A stretch of 63,378 nucleotides of DNA, the filler included, from Pelomyxa schiedti (Eukaryota > Protista > Evosea), in the NCBI GenBank assembly GCA_020536535.1. It is 10 parts of 10 records of this genome, joined end to end, with 100 filler letters (N's around TTAATTAATTAA, not from the genome) between each part and the next. Parts side by side here need not be neighbours in the genome. Positions count along the whole stretch, not along the records: positions 34,815 to 55,894 come from JAHLWZ010000678.1; 9 more parts are not named here. The stretch is one strand, 5' to 3'. This document shows, one piece after another, positions 471 to 55,195 of the stretch (position 1 is the first letter of the stretch; every line of letters starts with the position of its first letter). Under the pieces are notes generated by a model, which saw only the letters and a program-made list of their open reading frames with translations, was not told the origin of the DNA and did no database searches. A program made the translations under genes and the position numbers.

Positions 471-613
471 TCAAAATTGTATTTGATTCAACTATTAACT
501 CAATAAAGTGACTTGGGCCAGTAGATTTGACGTCTGGGCCAAGGGTCTGTCACGGTGCTCAGCTGAATGCTCCACAAAACAAGTCATCAAGGAAAGTAAA
601 TCCTGAGTTAGTA

Positions 614-2935
614 TTAGGGTTCAAGGCAACTTGTGGGTGAAGCTGGGGGAGAGGGATCTAGGTACCAGTCACCAGCTGTGGCTCCGGCTGTGTAAACGTG
701 GAAAGATACAGTGAACCGGAACAGTGATTTGAGTGGCGCCCTTGTGTGGGACTTGATTATGCTTGTTGACACATATGGAACCCACAGGGCATCGGTTGAT
801 GCCAGGGTGCGGAACTCCCGGCAAACCTAAATTTAGTTTGAGTTTTTGCTCTGAGCACTTGCTTGGTTTGCAGCGGTAATTGAATGCAAAAAGATGATCG
901 AAAGATATACGGCTGAAAGGCGAAAAAGAGATTTTCGGTCACAGTACGAAAAAATATTCATCCACAATTCATGAGGAAGCATGCCAAAAACGTTACTATA
1001 AAGCTGCAACCACCAGGCATCTCCCTGCATCTTTCCTTTGTATTCAATATTAATATTTTTTTGAACAGTAAATTTCTGAGTACCTGTGGGTAGTCCTGAA
1101 GGCGTCAATGCTCGGCCACCAGCCAGTATGAGGGAGCCAGTTCCGGAAGAAAGAAGAGTGTGGAATTCTCGTACTGGGGGTGAATTCGCAATATCAATGC
1201 GGGACCATTCGTATGAACCCAACGTGAGTCTAGTCAAATTAATGTGAAGGTTGAAAAGGGAGAGAGTACCATACCTCAGTAAAACCATAGACTTTGCTGT
1301 AGGTACACAAGAGCACACAAACATCTCGTCCCCAATGACAGCGGCTGAATGACCTCGCATAGGAGGCGGTGTGATACCTTTGGTCACTGGCTTGAGCCAT
1401 TCCATGCAGAGCAGATCTTGATTTAGGTGAGAGGTGACTTCTTAATAAAATTAGGGCTGTTATTACCAAAAACCCACAAATCGTTGAGGCTTTGACCACT
1501 TAATGTTCCGCCTGGTTGAAGTTGTACAGGTTTATTTTTTTTTCTTTCTGACTTAACTTACCAAATATAATCATGGTCTTATTGTGACAAATAGCGGTGT
1601 GACGAAATCTTGCACGCGGAGCTCGTATTGTAGGCTTAATTGGAACCTTAGTGAACATTGCTTTAATGATCAGTCGTATTAAAAAGGGGCAGACTGGCAT
1701 CCAACTGCGTTCAGCCAAGTCGTAACACGTCACATCCTCACATGCCATACCATTGGAACACCTTGCGTTTTTCAATATCACTGCATTAGGTAAAACTGGC
1801 TCAACTCACCCACCAAAGATAAATAAGCACTTGTCAAAAAAATCATTGATGCCCAATATTGGGGAGATGGGGACGCAGAGGCATTTCCTTCAGGAAGGAG
1901 GGACCACTCCCCAGTTGTTACATTAAGGCAACGCAAGGCATTTGTATAGCTGTTACTTTTTCCTGCGCGCTGCGTTGGTTGAGAAGCTATTGTAGGAATG
2001 AAGTAACCTCCAAAGAGGAATACTAAGTTGTCAGTAAACCTTAGATATTGGGTTTCCTGCTCTTCCAGTTGTGGCTACTTTGACGACATGTGCAAAAAGA
2101 TCTTGAATATGGTCATCAGTTAAGGCACTTATTTCAAGATATACTGAGGCGTAAACATTTCGTGCAACCTGAAGGATGTCACAGAATTCCTACGGTGATG
2201 AGTCTACCTCAGATGCGCTTTCATAAGAAATGGGCATAACCCCTCGTGATACAAGCTGCTGTAGGACAATAGGGTTTGACCTCAAATCCCGTTTTGTTCC
2301 CACCAGGATGAACGGCATATTTGGACAATGGTGAGAAATCTAACTTTCATTGGTACAGTGGAGGTGGTTCATCAGGTAACCCACCTCAGGGACCCACTTT
2401 TATTTGGAAAACGTTAAATAAAGTTTTTGTGGTGGTGTTACCTTTGACAAACATTTTCCAAAGAGGCATGGGAAATAAGCATACCTTACGTGTCACCACA
2501 AAACGAAAAAGATGGGCTCCACCAGGACAAGATCGGCGTGTGGGTAGCTCAGTGCCCTCTGCCTGTCATAGTACTCGACACCCCCGAGGATCATGAATTT
2601 CAAAGGAATAAAAGAGGGTACTAGCACCCGCAGTATCCCATAATACATTCGTTGTCCTGGTACACTACATTCATGCTTCATCACCAAATGGCAAGGAAAT
2701 AAGGAAAAACCTGTAATTATCAAACACCTTTGGTGACAATGTGCATGCACAAAAACAAAAAATGTGGGTAGTGATTACGGTTGGTGTGATTGCGGTCGGA
2801 AAAGCTCCAGAAGTGCACCGTAGAAGCAGGCACGTCTGAGAAACTACAATCAGAGGAATGACGAGAAGGAAAACCACGTGCTTTGCCAGCACCGTCCTAC
2901 GGGGACTATCTTCGGTTTGGCATGTTTTAACCTTT
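614..2935 (-). pseudogene. Rho-like GTPase + Kelch repeats + C-terminal F-box; frame-disrupted
   Basis: Rho motifs appear in order: KIVPVG/DGAGK, TCLLLRCTSGAFPTAITPT-VFDNY, LWDTAG, EYYDRQRALSYPHADLVL, SHASLENV, WVPE, YLEISALT. Kelch repeats follow (CLFIFGG, PRARFRHTAICHNKTMIIFG, PPPMRGHSAAVIGDEMFV, PPVREFHTL). Then an F-box: LPHELWMNIFSYCDRKSLFRLSA|VCREFRTLASTDALW, with stop at 614-616. Several junctions cannot be kept in frame with GT-AG introns, e.g. in the G1 box and the T7 run near 1836-1842. Confidence 0.65.
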
Positions 2936-36980: not shown

Positions 36981-38719
36981 TGCCTTGCCTATTGAGTGGA
37001 TGGTGCCAGTTTGTGCGGCTGTGTGCCGGGTCCAAGCAAGTTCCAGAATTGTAATCAGGGTTGAGGGGTAGTCATAGTTGGCAGTGGCTGCCGCAAGAGC
37101 AAAAGCGCCAGTTGGGTGAATGCACGGGTTGGGGTTAACCTTCAAGTCACAATGTCAGGAGGTACTTATTATATGATGGAGGGTAAGTAATGCAGACAAC
37201 CTCTGGAGGGGGAAATGAGATTGAGTAGAACAATTGACGTGGGAAGGCTCACCTAGAACATAGGCAGTGCCATCTTTGAATCTCACATCCACTCGGGCTA
37301 AGAACTGAATGACTACATTATTTGGAAGTGTGAAGTACACAAACCAAAGTCACGCATTCCCACTGCCTTGAATGCACCTACAGCGGCATCTGCAACCAGC
37401 TTAGCGGTGGGCTCATCTAAGATTGCCGGGCAGCTCAAGTCAAATTCTTTGAAAAACGGAGAACTTTCATCCCACTGAAGGACGTAGTAGTCAACGAAAA
37501 AGATACAGCAACGAAACTCACCTTGGTCTCAAAATCGTATATTCTCATGTAAGGGTCGTCTATGAGACCAAACAAATACTCAACAAGAGGCAAAGCCACA
37601 GCTCCTTCAGTGACTCCGTCTCCAGCTTCCCAAACAGAAACTGTGAACTCCCTTCCATCAATAAACTGCTCCACAAGTGATGGCGTTTTGTAGACATCTT
37701 GCATGAATAATACACGGTCACGCAACTGCTGCTCTGTTTTTACGATACTGGCATGCTTGCTTATCCCAATGGATGCATCTTCTGCCAGTGGCTTGACGAT
37801 AAGGGGGGGACTTTCAGGGGGAAGAGGGAGTGAGATAGGGTCTGTGTGGGAGTAAAAAGTCTGCCCCAATGGTGTGGAGAGGTGATTTTCAAGGAATTTT
37901 TCTTTAGCAAGCCCCTTGTTGACAGCTATCTGCAAGGCTTGTTATATTTAATACACAACATGCCTCTGACCTTTAGTGCGGTTGAATTTGGACCTGTATA
38001 AGCAAATCCCATTTTATCAAAGGCATCAGTTGCGTCAGGATGTTTAGAAGAAAGCCCATCTACAGACTCTACAAGATTCAATATTACTGTATGATGGCGA
38101 TCCACTTCACCAAGCGCCTTCTCAATATCTGAGACCGATCTGACTCCAATTGCCCACACGCGCACATCAGTAGAAGGCAAATCCATTTGGCATGGGTCAT
38201 CTGGAAATGGAGAAGAGTAAGTATCTGTTTCATTTCAAGGCGGAATTCCAATGACCACATTCAAGTCAAACGCAGTCATGAGCTGAGCCACGTTTGTAAA
38301 AGAAGAGCATTCGAATACTTACCGCTATTGCAGTCACCGCCAAGAGGGTGAGGGTTGTGCCTCAAGAAGGCAGCCAGGAGGCCCGCTTTGGCCTCGGGAG
38401 TGCTCAACGTGTCCACTATCAGAAGTGACGTGTCCCTCGCCTCATCGTCACTGCTGAAGTTCTCCTCCTCTCCTGCGCATCCAAAATTAACGCGTTCGAA
38501 ACACCTCCAACGGGGGGCCGCTATTTCGCGAATGCCGCGGCGGGCGACAAAGAACGGCGTAGTGGGGCCAACAAACCTGCGGATATGTAGTCCTCCCTCA
38601 AAACCACGTTGTACATTACGATTACGTTGAACAACAACACCCCCGCCGTAACACCGACGCCCAGCCCCATCGTCGCTCCCCCCGCTTTGTTTTCTTCTAA
38701 TTCCCCTTTTTCGGGTCAA
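36963..38719 (-). CDS. D-Ala-D-Ala-ligase-like ATP-grasp protein, bacterial type, with introns (5' end uncertain)
   Basis: ILNLVES, GFAYTG, NKGLAK, LIVKPLAEDASIGI, LVEQFIDGREFTVSV, ARVDVRF and VL(E)VNPNP occur in the canonical order, separated by GT-AG introns. Confidence 0.85.
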
Positions 38720-46792: not shown

Positions 46793-47319
46793 ATGGCGAA
46801 GCATCGTGCGTAACTCCAGTTCTCTTCGTTATGCTACAAACTAACACGCTGTGAAGATCCCGATTTGATTATGTGCCGAAAACAACCAGGCATCGCCATT
46901 GGACGCCTGTGTGAAAAGTGTATGCGGTTTTTTTTCCTCCCTTTTTGTCTTGCTCCTCTGCAACCCTTTCTTATTTACGTGTACTTGTAGGTGACGGGAA
47001 GTGTGTAATTTGTGATTCTTACGTGCGCCCGTGCACATTGGTACACATTTGTGATGAGTGCAATTACGGCTCTTACCAAGGGCGCTGTGTCATTTGTGGA
47101 GGTCCTGGTATTTCTGATGCCTATTACTGCAAAGAGTGCACAATACAAGAAAAAGATGTATGGCACTTTCCTTCGTTTGTGATACACGTCTCACTCAATA
47201 CCAAAAAAAAAAAAACCTACATACAACAGAGGGATGGATGCCCGAAAATTGTCAACCTCGGTAGCTCTAAAACTGACCTATTCTATGAGAGGAAGAAGTA
47301 CGGCTTCAAAAAACGATAG
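46793..47319 (+). CDS. PHF5A: PHD-finger splicing factor PHF5A/Rds3 (SF3b subunit)
   Basis: Spliced product MAKH|[21 protein letters not shown]|[56 protein letters not shown]|[29 protein letters not shown]. Confidence 0.98.
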
Positions 47320-47502: not shown

Positions 47503-49119
47503 TCACTCGTCCTTGGCGTTTTTGTTGAATGCAAATGACAATACTAGTGGTGCTCCGCACAGTTGAAAACCTTGTGCCACTTCAAGTGCCTTTTGGGCTT
47601 CCTCGACTATTTTACTTTAGAGAAATTGGGAGTCAATTTTTAGTGCTGGGTACCTTGTTGGAAAGTGACAAATGCGGAGTGCCTTTTTCGAAGGAGTTTC
47701 ACAGTAATGTGAGGCGAAAATGAACCAAAAATGTTGTGGATGTCTTGTTGTAAAACAGGCTTCGCGATGTTTTTTACATAGAGTATCTATGGAACATGAT
47801 TCTGTGGCAATAAGCAAACAAGGAATCCTTACTTTGCTGGGTTTTCTGGGATTACTGCAGGGATTTAGTTCCGGATTGTTTTCAAGTAAAGCTGCCAGTT
47901 GCTCGGGTGTGGCACGTCTTGCCACAATCTCCTTAACAGTGAGGTGTGTAGTGCTACCTTGTGAGGGTGAAGAATTACCTATTTTACACGTTAAATTATT
48001 CTTGACAATTGCAAGGTGGAAGTACCTTCCACTTCTGTTACCTTGCCCTTTTTTCCTTCATTAAGGGGTTTGGGGTTGGGTGAGGGAGTAGCCTGGATTT
48101 CATTCTTTACATCGCTTGTGGATGAGGATGTGGATGAGGATGTGGATGTGGATGTGGATGTGGATGTGGATGTGGATGTGGATGTGGATGTGGATGTGGA
48201 TGTGGATGTGGATGTGGATGTGGATGTGGATGTGCTAGAGGACGTTGGGATTGGAGGAGCGGGTGGTAAAGAAGGCATATTATCGGCATCAATGGGAGGA
48301 AGAAGTGCCGGAGCAGGATACAAGAATTCAAACATTCGCCTTTCGTCAAAACTTTTAAGTAAAGAGCGTTCCAGTTCCCAAGCATGTCTTCCCAGGCCAT
48401 CATCAACTCTGGCGTGCTTCTGTATAAAGCTTAACGTGCGGGCTTGCAAACTTTCCGGTACTATATGAATAATATAGTTGGATTAGCTTACAGGCATTGG
48501 TTCAGAGACGGAACTAAAGCAAATAAAGAAATATTGTGGGAAGGTGTCAATTACCTTCGTAAAGATTTTTGGATCAGTCTTTTGCCAGTAACAATTTCTT
48601 CTAAGTTTTTCTTCTTCAATTTGTAGTCGCTAAGTTTCATCACACCTCCAACAAGTAATTGCTCCTGTGTATCTCCTGTAGAAAAATCTACTTTCTGAGC
48701 TCTGTGTGCCATTGGTTTTGGTTTTGATTGTTGTGGGCTCCGTATGAGGAAGAACGCTGCATACAATGACACATTCGGTGATAATTGCTTCTCCAACCGT
48801 TTCTTAAGTTCCAGTTGAATGATGTTTGGGCTCGACTTAATGGGTGCAACGCCGAGCTGCTGGTCCTCGAAAGGGATGCTGCCAAATGCAAAATATGTCA
48901 CATAATTCAATCGCACCACCCACGAACTACGCGCTCCCCCACGATCTTACTTGCTTCGTGTCGTCCTAATTACACCACGACTGCGGTACCTCGCGGGATT
49001 CCCACACGGTATGCCCGTGACCTACGTAAAATCACTATAACCAAACAAACAGACGAATGATCTTGTCGTACCTCGTAGCTTGTTGGATCTGGCTTGAATG
49101 GCCTCCCATTAACCGACAT
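47503..49119 (-). CDS. RBM41-like RRM protein (paralog family of U11/U12-65K/RNPC3)
   Basis: C-terminal RRM ILYVKNIAKPVLQQDIHNIFG...SAFVTF|..EAQKALEVAQGFQLCGAPLVLSFA, plus GRHAWELERSLLKSFDERRMFEFLY, which resembles RBM41 RREMEIEKSLF...FLKALY as recalled. No N-terminal RRM seen. Confidence 0.7.
48139..48234. repeat. (GATGTG)16 microsatellite encoding a Thr-Ser repeat
   Basis: Pure hexamer run inside an exon of the RBM41-like gene. Confidence 0.95.
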
Positions 49120-49301
49120 TAATTTGACAATCTCTAATCACAAAAAAAACAGAGTCCGTTTGAAGAGGGAAAAAACAAATTGATTCTTGTCGTTTGTTCC
49201 TCCTTCTGTGTGTACAGGGTTTTGTGTTCGCGCTCGCCGCTGTTTTTTGTTCCTTCGTCGATGGAACTTGTCCTTGGGGTTGGGACCCATAATCATCCTC
49301 C

Positions 49302-52300
49302 TTACTCACGGAGGAGCGCGGTGGTGATTCTCTTTGCGCGTAGGTCCTTGAGTGCAATAACCAGTTCGGAGACATTCTCCCACTCCTTGGCTGATTCCTC
49401 CTTGTGGTCAGCGGCCTTCTGGCGGTGCCTGAGGGCCTCTAGGCTGAGCTCCTTAACGCGCTTCTTGCGGTCCTGTTTGTGTTGGAAGATAGGTTAGATA
49501 TACAGTGAAGTTTAATACTTGTGTTCTAGCGCTCCGCGTTTGAATGTAGGTTTGTTTTTTTAGTAAAGATAATAGGGCTGTATACCAGGGACGACTTGAA
49601 GTCATAGTCGGATTTATGCTTATCGGGGTGCTCGTGGTGATCCGGCTTGTGCTCGTCGTGATGGTCGTGTTCCGGCTTGTGCTCGTCATGATCATGATCT
49701 TTGTGGTGTTCATCGGCATGCTCATCTGGCTTGTGCTCGTCATGCTCGGGCTTGTGCTCAGGCTCGTGGTGCTCCTCGTGCTTGGGCTCGTCATGGTGTT
49801 CATGGTCGGGTTTGTGATCATCGTGGTGCTCAGGCTTGGGCTCGTCATGATGCTCAGGCTCGTGGTGCTCCTCATGCTTGGGCTCGTCATGGTGTTCATG
49901 GTCGGGTTTGTGATCATCATGGTGCTCCGGCTCGTGGTGCTCCTCATGCTTGGGCTCGTAATGATGCTCAGGCTTGGGTTCGTCGTGCTCGGGCTTGGGT
50001 TCGTCATGATGCTCCTCGGGCTTGGGCTCATCGTGATGTTCCTCAGGCTTGGGTTCATCATGATGCTCGGGCTTGGGTTCGTCGTGATGTTCTTCGTGCT
50101 TGGGCTCATCGTGATGCTCGTGTTCATCGTGGTCCGGTTTGGCAACCGGGGGGGGCTCGGGGGTGGCCGCATTCCTCTCAGCCTCTTCCCTTTCCTTTTC
50201 TTTCCTGTCAGCCTCTTCCTTCTCCTTTACTTTCCTTTCGGCCTCTTCCTTATCTTTCCTTTCCTGAGCTTCTTTTGCTTTTTGTTCAGCCTCCTCTTTC
50301 AGTTTTTGAGCAGCCTCTGCTTCTTGTTGGGCTTCTGCAGCCTCTTTCTTCTCCAACTCTCTTTGCTGCTCTTCGTCAATAAGGTCGACACATTTATCAC
50401 AGAACGGCTCATTGGAAATTTGATAAAATTCCCCACTTTTCAGTGGTCCTTTGCAGTTGTAGCATTTGAAACAGCTCTCGTGGTAAGTGCGTTTGAGCTG
50501 CGATATCATAAGTAAGAAAAAGTAATTCCAATACAAACCGTCTTGACGAACTGAGTGCCCAGTACATTCTGTTTGCAAGCATAACACAAAACAGCAAAAA
50601 TTTTCTGGAAATCTTCAGAGCAGTAAAGTTTTCCGTCTTTCTTGCAATACGAGCCGGTGATTTTCACTTTGCAGTGATGACAAACAAAACAGTCTGAGTG
50701 TATCTTTTGTCCTTCTTCCAAAGTCACATAAGGTTGAGTCAATGGTTTCTTGCATACTAATGCACAGATTAAAAGGATGCCAACCATATGAAGAAAAACA
50801 AAAAATTTTCATACCTCCACACTTTTCCGCTGAACGTAACTGAGCTTGAGCACATGGTTGACACATAACCTCGTTATTTCTGGCAAAGAATTTATTGCTT
50901 GGGAACGGCTTCTTGCACTCTGTTTTTGGATGTGATTAAGCCTTTTCAAACGAGAGAAAGCAAACCTGCACAAACGAAACATTCAAAATGCCACATCCGG
51001 CCCACAGCCTTCAGGAGCTTTTGTGTGGTGAGTGTCGGCTTCTTGCATCGAAGGCAAAGGCTAGGGTCAACATCAGCCCCAAGAACAACGGCGGTCTTCT
51101 TTGGTGCTTCGGGTGCATCACTGGGTGGCATAGTCTACAAAAAAAAAAGTCAGTTCCACACGTATTTTCGTAGTTTTGGTACCATATGTTCTTCTTTGGC
51201 TGGCCCTAATTGAAAGACCTTGACAGGTCTAGGTGTAAAAAATCTAAGAGTGAATTTCCTCTCGTGTCCTGGATCAAATGTGGAAGGAATAACAATATAA
51301 GGGACCCTGGGCTTTATTTCAAACTTTGCAGTCTCTGGAGAACCTCATTAGTAGGGATAAAAGCACTTTCAATTTACCATCACGATCATTGGTGAAAGGA
51401 TCACTCTGGAAAACTCTGGTCTTGCGAGTCGCAGGAGCAATTGGTCTTGCGGGAACTTTGAAGTATAAGCTGGATACTGCCTTCGAAGAAGAGACAAGAG
51501 ACTACACACCTTTTGCTTCAAAGATATTTAGACCAATAGTCTTCCCATCGTCCTTGCCAGTACCGATTCTAAGATCTTCTTGAGAGAGCACCACGAAACA
51601 GAGCATTGGTTGATCATCATCACTCTGAATACCAAACTGGGGATTTTTGTACCAAGTGGTGGGATTATTTGGGCATCCACCAGCAGTCTCACCTTTCCAT
51701 TCATCCCGGAAAATGTAGTGGTAATGGGGGTCAACGCACTGAAAGCGGGTAAGTAATCACTTGCGTTTGTTCTTTTCTTACCTTTTCCGAGTAAAGGCGG
51801 CAAATGTACAACTTTGTGAACCAACGAGCAAAGTCCTTTACCCGTATCCTGAATGACATAAATAACGCAAGACATAAATTACAGAATGAAACCAGAATGT
51901 CCCATCATCTGCATCTACTTGGTGTAGCTGTTCCTTTATCTCTGGAGTCCACAGCGGACTTCCATCACTCCACTTACCAGTCCATTCTCTTTGTCCCCAA
52001 GGATTGCTAGAATAGTTGGTTAATTTGTTATTTTGGGTTTTTTGGAGAGAAACCGAATTTTGATGAGATTTGTTTTCTACATGCTATTAGAGGAAAAAAA
52101 AGGTTGGGAGGGAAAGCTCTACCTTATCCCCACGAGTAACAGAAGTAGCATAGATCAATGTGTATCTTAGGCATGTGAGAAAGGAGAAACTATGGCTACT
52201 TGCATACGTGTGCTTGGCCATGAGTCCAGTCTGTTGCATTTCTTCTTCTGGCAGGTTGCTCAGTGAGCTACTGCATCCTAAAAGCCATCCCCGATTTATG

Positions 52301-53079
52301 GCATAGGTAATGGCTGCCCACAACTTCTCTCTATCCTCCTTTCTGCGCTCCTTGGACGGCCATTTCAGTACTTCACCAGCACCAGATGTCAGGTCCGAAA
52401 ACGCATAAAGAACATTTCCAGATATAATACCCTTGGAGAGATTAATGGGGAATGGGGAAAAGAGGAAGGAGTACGTGATAACTGCCATGAACCTTAGCAT
52501 AGGCTTTCTCAAGAAGAGAAACCCCTGAAAGTGTTGTTAGGATACATGCCAACAAAAACTTGAGTAAACCTACATTGCTCGTTTGGATCCTTGCAGCGAG
52601 CAAACGCAGGTTTGCGATCAGCTGTGCAAGGCAATCGGTCATCCACACACACAGGCATCCATGAACCATTCTTCCAGAAACGGCAAATAAACAAACCAAT
52701 ATCAAGTTGGTAATCCACAAGTATGTTCTTTATCCTTTGTTTTTGAATAAGAACCAGAGAGAAGGAAGAGGCACAAACAATTCTGGTCGGTTTGCAGCAC
52801 AAGCCACAGCACCAAGGAAGTAGGAATCACGCAAATCGCCTTGTATAACATCGGTGTAGGTTGTACCATCCACTTCCAAAGCAGGGGCGTCTGTGAATTC
52901 ACTGGGTCTCAACCACACGAGCTTGTCTGCTATCGCTCGAAGAGGACTGCCCGTGAATGTAGAGTAAATTGATGTAAGGTCTGCGGGAAAAAGAGGATCA
53001 CAGAACTTCCCATCAACCAAGTGCTGTGGTGTTTCACAAAGCGTGTGAGATGAGGAAAAATATATAACCTGCAAAGACC

Positions 53080-53126
<47 letters not shown>

Positions 53127-53254
53127 GAACCGTCTTTGCATCGGCGACAATCGCGGCTATCGCGTCCGTATCGCTGGGGGGTGTAATAGAGCTCAAAACA
53201 CCAACTGCCGGTGTTGGTGTAGCTGCCGGTGGTGTCGCGGTACTAGTTGTCGCC
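49302..53254 (-). CDS. Calpain-like (CysPc with Cys-to-Ser, plus domain III) fused to three LIM domains, an E/K coil and a His-rich repeat
   Basis: CysPc motifs QGDLRDSYF, VDDRLP, LLEKAYAK, KHTY, IRNPWG and domain III motifs EWKGETAGGC, NPQF, YIVIPSTFDPG. A 48-nt phase-0 intron (51135-51182, GTACC...CTGAC...T-tract-TAG) joins EEHM to TMPPSD and the LIM domains (CLRCKK..WHFECFVC, HSDCFVCHHC, YHESCFKCYNC). The 3' end is approximate. Confidence 0.8.
49610..50140 (-). repeat. Coding tandem repeat of His/Glu/Pro/Lys/Asp (EHHDEPKP-like units)
   Basis: Visible in ORF 49526..50587: DEPKPEHH, DEPKHEEHH and EPEHHDDHKPDHEHH repeated. Confidence 0.95.
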
Positions 53255-53653
53255 ATTCCGCTGGTGCTTCTTTCGGCCTCTTGGGTTTAGGTTTTTTTTT
53301 GTTTTATGAAAAATTTTGTACGGGCAAAGTGTCCTTGGCTTTTTTGTACCGTTCTTCGTAGGGGAGGAATTTTTTCGATTTTTCGGAAGTTGCTCCACCG
53401 AAGGAACAAAAAATAAGCTTTCGGCTAAATGCAAATTTTATTTCGGGGCATCATCACATCACTCCTTGGAAATAAGTCTATTTCTGCTGAAGTCTTCCCT
53501 TCCCGCTATTGTTTCTTGTTGGAAAAGACTTGTTGTCCAAAACACTTGGCTCCCTCTTCTTTTCTTTTTTTACATTTTCTGGAAGTTGCACAAACTCTTG
53601 GTGGTGTGGAAATACCGTTGGAGGTTTGGAAGGAGGAGGAAGGAAAGGGGGAA

Positions 53654-55195
53654 TTAGGACTTGCCCTTATTGGACAAATCGAATTTCATGTCCTGAAGCC
53701 ACAACAGCTTTTCCAGATAGTTGGTACACACAAACTGGTGCACTCGTTTCTTCTTCTTGAAGAGCTTGGAGCGGTCAGCCGTAACCTCAAATCCCATAGG
53801 GAATTTCGTGGAATCCTGTATTTGTGCTGTTGCCAGTTCCACAGCCACTAATTTGCATCTTCCAAAGCGAGAAGCCGGTCTGGCATACAGCAAGTGTGTA
53901 GGAGTGAGTAGTGTGTATGTGTCCTGTGCTTTGCCTTTGTCAAGTATAACCTGCAGAGTTCCATCGCGGATCACTTTGACTCCTGTGGGAAGTGCGGCCG
54001 GAATTGTGGGATCATTCATAACGGCCTCGCATAGGGAGCAAAGGTGCTCTATCTTTTGTGCATTGGCCACGTTGGCATTGATGTCCGCTATGAGGCCTTG
54101 TGTGAATGTGATACTTGCTTCAAGTGCTTCATGTTCTTCAGTGTTCTCGCGTGGCACAACCTTTTGCATCTCTCGAAGAAGAAGAGGATATCTAGATATG
54201 ATGTGGGTACAGGTTGCAGTGTTTGTTTGGGTGAAGTGACAGTTCGAGTGGCATGTGTTTATTGGTGTTTTCTCTGGTTATGGGGAAAGAGGCACACCGG
54301 CAAATTCGTTGAACGGGTTTAATAAGGAAACCCTTTATCTCTAGTGACTTGCATTCTGGTCGCTGACGGCACTGCACGAGAAATTCGTGAAATTTTGGAT
54401 TTTTGTCCAGAGCGTCAATAGTTTGCAAAACCTGCAACAAGTAAAAATTGTGCCAATTCTCTTCAAAACGTTACTCACTGCATCTTGCCTTCTACAGTAT
54501 ATAGAATACGCCTTGGAGAGTTCATCTTGTAGAGATAAAAAGGCATTCCCCACTGGAGGAGGGGAGTGTGGTTGAGCTTTCAGAATGGCTGCTGCTTCCT
54601 TAAGTTTCCCGAGCAGTTGTCTAATGAATGTTTAACTAATCTTGTATATAAGGTCACCACACCTATTTATTGCCGGTAAATCTCTGACATTGATGAAAAT
54701 TAGTGATATATCTTTCTCTGAAACAAAATCGGAAGATTCCAGAGGTGTTAAAAATACAGAGATGATTATCTCCAGATCTGCAACATAATTTTCCTGCAAG
54801 AGGTTATACAATATAAATGCGACTTGGATCCACCTCTGTGAAGCAGAGTTCTTGCATTACATGCATACGAGACACCTCCATTTCATTTAGTGTTGAGTCC
54901 TATTACCGGAGTGATTTAGTGGGAGTAAAAGGATGATGGAAAAACCTCTCCTTGTTCTGGTACAAAAAATGCTTGTAATGAAGCAGTAGAAGCGGATCGT
55001 GTAAGAGATTCCTTATGTGATATTATTTATCAAAGCAACAGTTTTTTTATGATTATTATTAGAAAGTGAGAGACGACTGTTTGTACCCCTGGAGGCGGTG
55101 TTGTTGCTCTTGTGGGTGTTGAGGATGGTATCTGCTGCGGCGCTTGAGGAGAGCCCGGCAGTGGAGGGGTAACAGATTGAGTAATGGGAGTTGAA
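53654..55195 (-). CDS. DH-PH RhoGEF (5' end lost in gap)
   Basis: RMHVMQELCFTE|ENYVADLEII..FLTPL, AYSIYC, FLIKPVQRICR|YPLLLREM, then a PH-like domain ending EKLLWLQDM. Confidence 0.9.

Follow-up and report, generated by a model that had tools for sequence, protein, structure and literature searches.

LIM domains have been recorded on calpains before. LIM is one of 24 domains that Zhao et al. 2012 give as combined with the catalytic domain CysPc, and they record a single calpain in Entamoeba histolytica (PMC3563603); Rawlings 2015 gives N9TPR9_ENTHI the architecture "pC2 ~ LIM" and LIM in Entamoeba species, with the caution that such domain associations could be gene-assembly errors (PMC4631099). 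The Entamoeba calpain-like protein, of about 53 kDa, keeps Cys57, His206 and Asn226; work that ties it to programmed cell death gave its LIM domain no attention (PMC6167430). Homologues from other lineages have been tied to the cytoskeleton: CAPN6, which is without the active-site Cys, stabilises microtubules via its domain III (PMC13413365), and trypanosome calpain-like proteins, among them ClpGM6, are cytoskeletal (PMC4121973). Here we describe a gene of Pelomyxa schiedti (positions 53256..49302, minus strand) whose product joins a calpain core, with Ser at the position of the catalytic Cys, to three LIM domains on one polypeptide. It lies in a window of 63,378 nt, the whole stretch of DNA that was analysed, which is made up of ten joined parts of assembly GCA_020536535.1; all positions count along this window. 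P. schiedti, a member of the Archamoebae, is an anaerobic amoeba that lives free.

The combination of CysPc and LIM is itself already known; what is new in the P. schiedti protein is the Ser-for-Cys replacement, the series of three LIM domains behind domain III, and the presence of both an ER/K-type helix and a His-rich tail. It is rather probable that the protein, which belongs to a small clade of LIM-calpains of Pelomyxa-like organisms, is a proteolytically dead, LIM-targeted calpain scaffold, a function that we infer from sequence. The first-pass annotation of this DNA had spoken of an undescribed scaffold, which does not hold: the same 1028-residue fused model is deposited as KAH3759519.1, and CysPc with LIM had been catalogued for Entamoeba in 2012 and 2015 (PMC3563603, PMC4631099), prior cataloguing being one of the grounds for refutation named at first pass. 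In our literature search, Pelomyxa and calpain were not found together in any paper. Among the closest described systems is the Entamoeba calpain-like protein (XP_657312.1; N9TPR9_ENTHI), which likewise comes from the Archamoebae and carries LIM C-terminal to the calpain core within one polypeptide. Unlike the P. schiedti protein, it keeps the triad, has no domain III listed, and has no E/K helix or His tail reported; and whereas the Entamoeba listing carries a gene-model doubt, the P. schiedti fusion is confirmed by RNA.

The coding region consists of 17 exons and 16 GT..AG introns, running from the ATG at 53256-53254 to the TAA stop at 49304-49302, and encodes 1028 residues. Its translation equals KAH3759519.1 (P0001 in our protein set) residue for residue, a protein named "calpain-1 catalytic subunit [Pelomyxa schiedti]" in GenBank. 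The 1028-residue protein was also returned by an exhaustive protein search with a single calpain exon (94% identity over the exon). Pfam searches with single exons and with the whole protein gave Peptidase_C2 at 275 bits, Calpain_III at 70 bits and LIM at 106 bits in three stretches. Together with the AlphaFold2 (AF2) model and the translation, they bear out the earlier proposal of CysPc, a C2-like domain, three LIM domains, an E/K segment, a His repeat and a terminal segment, in that order. Between domain III and the first LIM domain lies a linker of ~45 residues, and the terminal segment is modelled as a helix. The parts of the product are as follows, with the predicted local distance difference test (pLDDT) given for modelled segments:

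51797..53005, minus strand: CysPc core, residues 49-346, interrupted by introns (PF00648, 275 bits, profile positions 1-297)
51237..51708, minus strand: domain III (C2-like/CBSW), residues 362-486 (PF01067, 70 bits; beta sandwich in AF2, pLDDT about 90)
Residues about 505-530, minus strand: linker (low confidence in AF2)
50852..51056, minus strand: LIM1, residues 531-583, split by a 46-nt intron at 50965-50920 (eight zinc ligands, Pfam LIM)
50611..50821, minus strand: LIM2, residues 594-644, split by a 58-nt intron at 50814-50757 (eight zinc ligands, Pfam LIM)
50390..50586, minus strand: LIM3, residues 653-704, split by a 41-nt intron at 50538-50498 (eight zinc ligands, Pfam LIM)
50168..50398, minus strand: E/K/A/Q-rich helix, residues about 702-778 (~75 residues; composition, AF2 helix)
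Residues about 779-787, minus strand: proline-rich hinge (sequence)
49604..50140, minus strand: His-rich acidic repeat (e.g. HDEPKPEEHH), residues about 788-966 (composition, AF2 disorder)
49308..49600, minus strand: C-terminal basic/acidic helix, residues 968-1027, across the last intron (AF2 pLDDT 75-83)

The CysPc core matches calpains in the PDB at E 6e-70, its pLDDT is mostly above 90, and the top Foldseek matches to its fold are all calpains. The EF-hand family, which forms the penta-EF-hand (PEF) domain of classical calpains, was not found in P0001 by Pfam; the C-terminal half is made of the LIM domains, helix and repeat instead. None of the segments behind the LIM array, namely E/K helix, His repeat and C-terminal helix, had a family in Pfam (for the last, none below E 0.1). 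The E/K segment (E 30%, A 18%, K 17%, K+R 24%, Leu 2%) is modelled as one continuous helix over residues 702-778, with pLDDT 87-96. Because hydrophobic seam residues are nearly absent from 702-778, it probably forms a single alpha helix of the ER/K type, with a spacer role, and not a coiled coil, so that the "E/K coil" of the first-pass annotation retains its E/K composition and probably loses its coil. The His repeat of ~180 residues (H 29%, E 23%, D 16%, P 15%, K 11%) is predicted to be disordered, with pLDDT about 35, and its DNA is built of tandem units with a period of 24/27/96 nt.

The calpain and LIM parts are one gene and are carried on one spliced mRNA. The exon that ends domain III closes with ...GPAKEEHM at 51183, the following exon starts with TMPPSD, and the two are separated by a single short intron:

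51135..51182, minus strand: junction intron, 48 nt, phase 0, GTACCA...CTGAC-T10-GTAG (spliced RNA joint)

Its removal connects Met504, with which the domain III exon ends, to Thr505, the first residue of the LIM exon. The CTGAC motif stands 19 nt before the 3' end and is followed by a T10 tract, so the phase-0 intron with CTGAC and a T-tract after EEHM, as first described, is indeed present at 51182-51135. The RNA data come from three single-cell RNA-seq runs (X1, X2 and X3), all of one sample, and the DNA data from run X4. The spliced joint 51134->51183 was found in RNA contigs of all three RNA runs, and the DNA run was without any joints. The joint-bearing contigs, of 1593 and 1866 nt, extend from 49934/49977, in the E/K and His region, to 51738/52354, in CysPc, and include all LIM exons and domain III. 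It is the position of this joint, inside single contigs spanning the calpain and the LIM/E-K parts, that establishes one gene and one mRNA.

The alternative is that a calpain gene and a LIM protein gene lie 18 nt apart and are co-transcribed or were misfused by the annotator. The unspliced sequence offers a basis for such an arrangement, as a retained junction intron leads to an in-frame TGA after 10 codons, with the nearest ATG 18 nt past that stop; a stop closely followed by an ATG was thus correctly noticed at first pass, the distance being 18 nt and not "about 15". Two separate genes are nevertheless next to impossible, given that the spliced RNA contigs unite both parts in frame. No transcript ends or loose ends were seen in the RNA contigs near 51150, where the first-pass annotation had placed the polyadenylation expected of separate calpain and LIM transcripts. 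In addition, the open reading frame (ORF) is equally unbroken in two homologues of other organisms, both on transcript-type sequences. One of them, P0002, is encoded by an environmental contig (L001) of 2108 nt that is intronless and transcript-like, with an A-rich leader at its start, and its ORF passes uninterrupted from domain III across ...PAKEEDMVAPPEP... into the LIM domains. The other, P0004, comes from Pelomyxa sp. JSP, where a Trinity transcript carries its complete ORF; P0004 has two LIM domains and ends there. A reading of the T-tract and AG before the ATG as a sign of an operon or of trans-splicing was also considered and is ruled out by the cis-spliced RNA contigs.

The active site of the protease core departs from the calpain consensus at two neighbouring positions and is otherwise retained:

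52823..52825, minus strand: Ser109, codon TCC, at the catalytic Cys position (alignment with solved calpains)
52831-52829, minus strand: Arg107, codon CGT, in place of the conserved Gly of the GDC motif (alignment)
52210..52212, minus strand: His268, the catalytic His, kept (invariant in the 40-sequence alignment; PDB alignment)
52003..52005, minus strand: Asn292, the catalytic Asn of RNPWG, kept (alignments)

The nucleophile motif reads QGDLRDSYF in P0001 and QGELGDCYF in both of the LIM-fused relatives, P0002 and P0004. Across relatives the consensus is QG.LGDC[WY]F, with Cys kept in 36 of 40. With its Cys-His-Asn triad incomplete, P0001 is a calpain homologue and, by its residues, no cysteine peptidase. 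In the assembly the nucleophile Cys is replaced by Ser109, and at the level of residues the earlier claim of a non-proteolytic core stands. Ser109 aligns with residue 105 of 1QXP, the best match in the PDB, which is Ser there too (GDSW); 1QXP is reportedly an engineered inactive C105S calpain used for crystallography. Replacement of Cys by Ser is the standard way to inactivate calpains. Like the engineered Cys-to-Ser calpains, P0001 bears this substitution, at the matching alignment column, in a core that is intact elsewhere. It differs from these laboratory, EF-hand-bearing mutants in being natural and non-classical, in having no PEF domain, and in the additional Gly107Arg. As a separate observation, Ser also occupies the nucleophile position of P0138, an unrelated environmental calpain (QGLLQDSWL).

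Elsewhere, the protease core shows no decay, and its fold is predicted to be intact. Of the 68 alignment columns that 85% or more of 39 calpains conserve, six are off consensus in P0001, as many as in P0002, and only L61I, G107R and C109S are unique to P0001. In a relative-rate test with P0004 as the outgroup, CysPc had 43 versus 25 lineage-specific changes (p=0.03), and such an excess was absent from domain III and the LIM domains of P0001. This acceleration specific to CysPc fits a mild relaxation that would be confined to the catalytic domain. For the Ca2+ sites we relied on a residue list in m-calpain numbering that reportedly goes back to Moldoveanu and colleagues in 2002. The residues that we take to form site 1 (V89, G91, D96 and E175) all match in the 1QXP alignment. 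Of those presumed for site 2, E292, D299 and D321 match, E323 is changed to Thr, and the partner R94 to Tyr.

Loss of the active-site Cys with retention of the fold is shared with CAPN6, ClpGM6 and CAP5.5, which are structural or regulatory proteins associated with the cytoskeleton. CAPN6 has Lys at the nucleophile position. Unlike P0001, it binds microtubules via domain III, has a C2 domain and has no LIM; the trypanosome proteins use repeats and acylation, also have no LIM, and carry different substitutions at the Cys.

To place the protein among its relatives, we constructed a maximum-likelihood tree of 40 CysPc-domain III regions, a set that included no Entamoeba sequence. P0002 and P0004, which have Peptidase_C2, Calpain_III and LIM by Pfam, are 58% and 42% identical to P0001, respectively. 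The three LIM-fused proteins form one clade (support 100/99), in which P0001 and P0002 are sisters (100/97). The sister of this clade (97/95) is the P. schiedti calpain P0012, which has CysPc and domain III but no LIM and in which the Cys is kept, so the organism has at least one further calpain with a catalytic Cys. The tree shows a single origin of the fusion within the 40-sequence sample, and this origin precedes the Cys-to-Ser change, because P0002 and P0004 share the architecture and the clade yet keep the Cys. In contig L001, a one-base frameshift is present inside LIM3 at about 1990-2108; the called P0002 ends ...FAVFALHANRMFLELSL, and the alternative frame reads on into a normal LIM3 (CFACKQNVFGTQFVK...), within which the contig breaks off.

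Homologues were searched among 5.8 billion protein clusters with three queries: the first 720 residues, a profile built from the LIM-fused trio, and the LIM region. No further protein with the CysPc-domain III-LIM architecture was found in these clusters, and none of the matches listed was an Entamoeba sequence. The LIM region alone matched only P0001, P0002 and one fish FHL mis-fusion. The ESM Atlas held no large cluster uniting CysPc and LIM, and a search of AlphaFold DB clusters with residues 1-500 returned only ordinary calpains. The clade of LIM-fused calpains is so far shown only in Pelomyxa-like organisms.

Rules for the binding of strained actin by LIM arrays have been proposed. According to a 2020 preprint, strain-sensing arrays need three or more LIM domains arranged serially with linkers of 7-8 residues, and a conserved Phe in each LIM is required for strained-actin binding (Sun et al. 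2020 preprint). LIM1-3 of P0001 are three full matches to C-x2-C-x15-23-[HC]-x2-[CHD]-x2-C-x2-C-x14-21-C-x2-[CHD], and the LIM2-LIM3 linker has 8 residues. Nine residues ahead of the seventh zinc ligand stand F571 (LIM1), Y632 (LIM2) and F692 (LIM3). The conserved-Phe position was mapped through what we take to be the FHL2 sequence (F80, F141) and serves as a lead only. By its sequence, the array agrees only in part with the rules for strained-actin binding. The three LIM domains in series and the 8-residue spacing of LIM2 and LIM3 are as in the arrays of paxillin, zyxin, FHL and fission-yeast Pxl1; unlike strain-sensing arrays, that of P0001 has a LIM1-LIM2 linker of 10 residues and Tyr for Phe in LIM2, and is joined to a calpain. 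Against the PDB, the LIM region matched paxillin best, with paxillin, LHX/ISL, PINCH and FHL1 at similar scores. Among the protist calpains returned by the homologue searches, P0258 and P0271 are fused to an ADF/cofilin domain (PF00241); because P0258 and P0271 carry this domain, the attachment of calpains to actin-binding modules appears to be recurrent.

Taken as a mechanism, the LIM-targeted scaffold would have begun as a protease carried to its site of action by its own LIM domains. In the P. schiedti copy the nucleophile has been lost, through a change of the kind used to inactivate calpains, and the protein would therefore most likely be unable to cleave. Its present role would be that of a binding or scaffolding module: the intact cleft and the mostly intact-looking Ca2+ sites may hold partners, the LIM array may bring it to other proteins, with actin structures as plausible sites, and the rigid helix may space out a His-rich tail whose role may be to bind metal ions or to react to pH.

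Several points weigh against this picture. The Ser109 codon has no RNA contig cover (depth 0 at 52775-52921), and Ser109 is without independent confirmation because the sole DNA run holding the codon is probably the assembly's own data. The RNA itself consists of assembler contigs from the one sample, in which rare unspliced isoforms would escape notice. In the LIM array, the LIM1-LIM2 linker exceeds the 7-8 residues of the rule, at 10 in P0001 and 14 and 21 in the two relatives, and in LIM2 a Tyr takes the expected place of the conserved Phe. Finally, substitutions in the calpain triad do not always abolish function (Zhao et al., PMC3563603).

Three alternatives were considered. Ser109 could be an amplification or assembly artefact or a rare allele, the true protein being an ordinary, active LIM-fused cysteine calpain. 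Only one base separates TCC from TGC, the codon is without an RNA contig, and the fully covering DNA run X4 (locus share 1.00) may be the assembly's own data. However, the DNA contig has a word depth of about 25 with no variant at 52823-52831, and the non-conservative Gly107Arg two codons away would call for a second, independent error within the motif, so that we regard an artefact as very unlikely. If Ser109 is real, the protein could still be an active, LIM-targeted hydrolase, with Ser109 as the nucleophile beside His268 and Asn292 or with a substitute residue. The retention of both of these residues and of nearly all other conserved core positions would agree with activity, as would the tolerance of some calpains to triad substitutions (PMC3563603). 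A hydrolase is nonetheless improbable, since the adjacent Gly-to-Arg change also alters the oxyanion-side motif and the rate acceleration specific to CysPc fits relaxed constraint. The identical Cys-to-Ser in crystallised 1QXP, presumably an engineered inactive form, argues in the same direction.

The third alternative concerns location: the LIM array and tail may not be cytoskeletal, with other protein contacts, folding back onto the calpain core, or metal binding by the His tail as the main function. The LIM domains are generic by sequence, scoring similarly against paxillin, LHX/ISL, PINCH and FHL1; the LIM1-LIM2 linker varies (10, 14 and 21 residues) over the three fused proteins; and 29% of the tail is His. 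Set against this are the canonical 8-residue LIM2-LIM3 linker, the Phe in LIM1 and LIM3, and the fusion of the protist calpains P0258 and P0271 to actin-binding ADF/cofilin (PF00241). A non-cytoskeletal role is unlikely on balance, though it is the most credible of the three, and the non-cutting, LIM-targeted scaffold remains the reading that we prefer.

The gene model that underlies these comparisons has 14 of the 16 introns in the range of 41-58 nt, among which the 48-nt junction intron is a typical one, and comprises the following exons and transcript features:

53256-53131, 53023-52779, 52734-52574, 52524-52475, 52431-52208 and 52165-52123, minus strand: exons 1-6 (translation equals P0001)
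52076-52054, 52006-51893, 51848-51782, 51738-51510, 51455-51378 and 51334-51183, minus strand: exons 7-12 (translation equals P0001)
51134-50966, 50919-50815, 50756-50539, 50497-49586 and 49472-49302, minus strand: exons 13-17 (translation equals P0001)
52054..52076, minus strand: micro-exon of 23 nt, part of ...KTNLIKI(R), directly before RNPWG (RNA joints 52006->52054 and 52076->52123 in all three RNA runs)
49473..49585, minus strand: last intron, 113 nt, the longest of the gene (RNA joint 49471->49585 in all three RNA runs)
49197..49301, minus strand: 3' untranslated region, about 105 nt (RNA contigs of X1 and X2 end at 49197-49200)

RNA confirms 14 of the 16 introns. The other two, at the 5' end, have no RNA cover, and the first of them is backed by homology to the intronless contig L001 (...AKTHLxxGK...). 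Read-through of an in-frame TAG at about 51503, as under a variant genetic code, was considered and is ruled out, as a 54-nt intron lies there in the RNA. In intron 1 (53130-53024), about 45 T follow one another without a break at 53083-53127 of the coding strand; positions 53071-53135 were skipped as a repeat in read mapping, and the DNA contigs break there. Base differences were seen at three positions: 50240 G>A in all three RNA runs and not in the DNA run, 51688 C>T in two RNA runs, and 49976 G>A in all four runs. These are most likely strain or allele differences or variants from the assembly of the His-region repeat, and editing is less likely.

Other genes and repeats surround the calpain gene on the 21-kb contig. 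An exon for a RhoGEF (DH) domain (54195-54440, minus strand) lies directly upstream on the same strand. The neighbouring genes include a PHF5-like splicing factor (46918-47316, plus strand) and an ATP-grasp/D-Ala-D-Ala-ligase-like ORF (37438-37935, minus strand). At 48093-48272, the choice of strand and frame decides whether a (GATGTG)n microsatellite reads (Ser-Thr)n or (Asp-Val)n. A direct repeat of roughly 500 nt lies close to each end of the contig (35492-35975 and 55348-55846), with blocks 93-100% identical and copies about 19.85 kb apart. Rfam gave no match in the 21-kb piece, this repeat included, which could be a dispersed repeat or a feature of the assembly.

The practical impact of these findings is modest, as the organism is hard to handle, the protein is already in databases and its function is inferred. 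A more ambitious version of the scaffold is a long shot at present: within a Pelomyxa-type LIM-calpain lineage, the P. schiedti member might be a natural substrate trap that has kept its Ca2+ switch, grips its partners uncut, sits on loaded actin via its LIM domains, and holds out a metal- or pH-sensing His tail on a rigid helix. If true, it would be a scaffold integrating calcium, force and metal, with no animal counterpart. The transcript evidence shows that calpain-LIM fusions in the Archamoebae are real proteins, despite the gene-model-error warning of 2015. P0002-like proteins with Cys and P0001 with Ser form a natural pair in which the role of a non-cutting calpain core may be addressed. 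Non-proteolytic calpains such as CAPN6 and the trypanosome proteins are poorly understood, and P0001, with L61I, G107R and C109S as its only unique changes at highly conserved positions, may offer a clean model for them.

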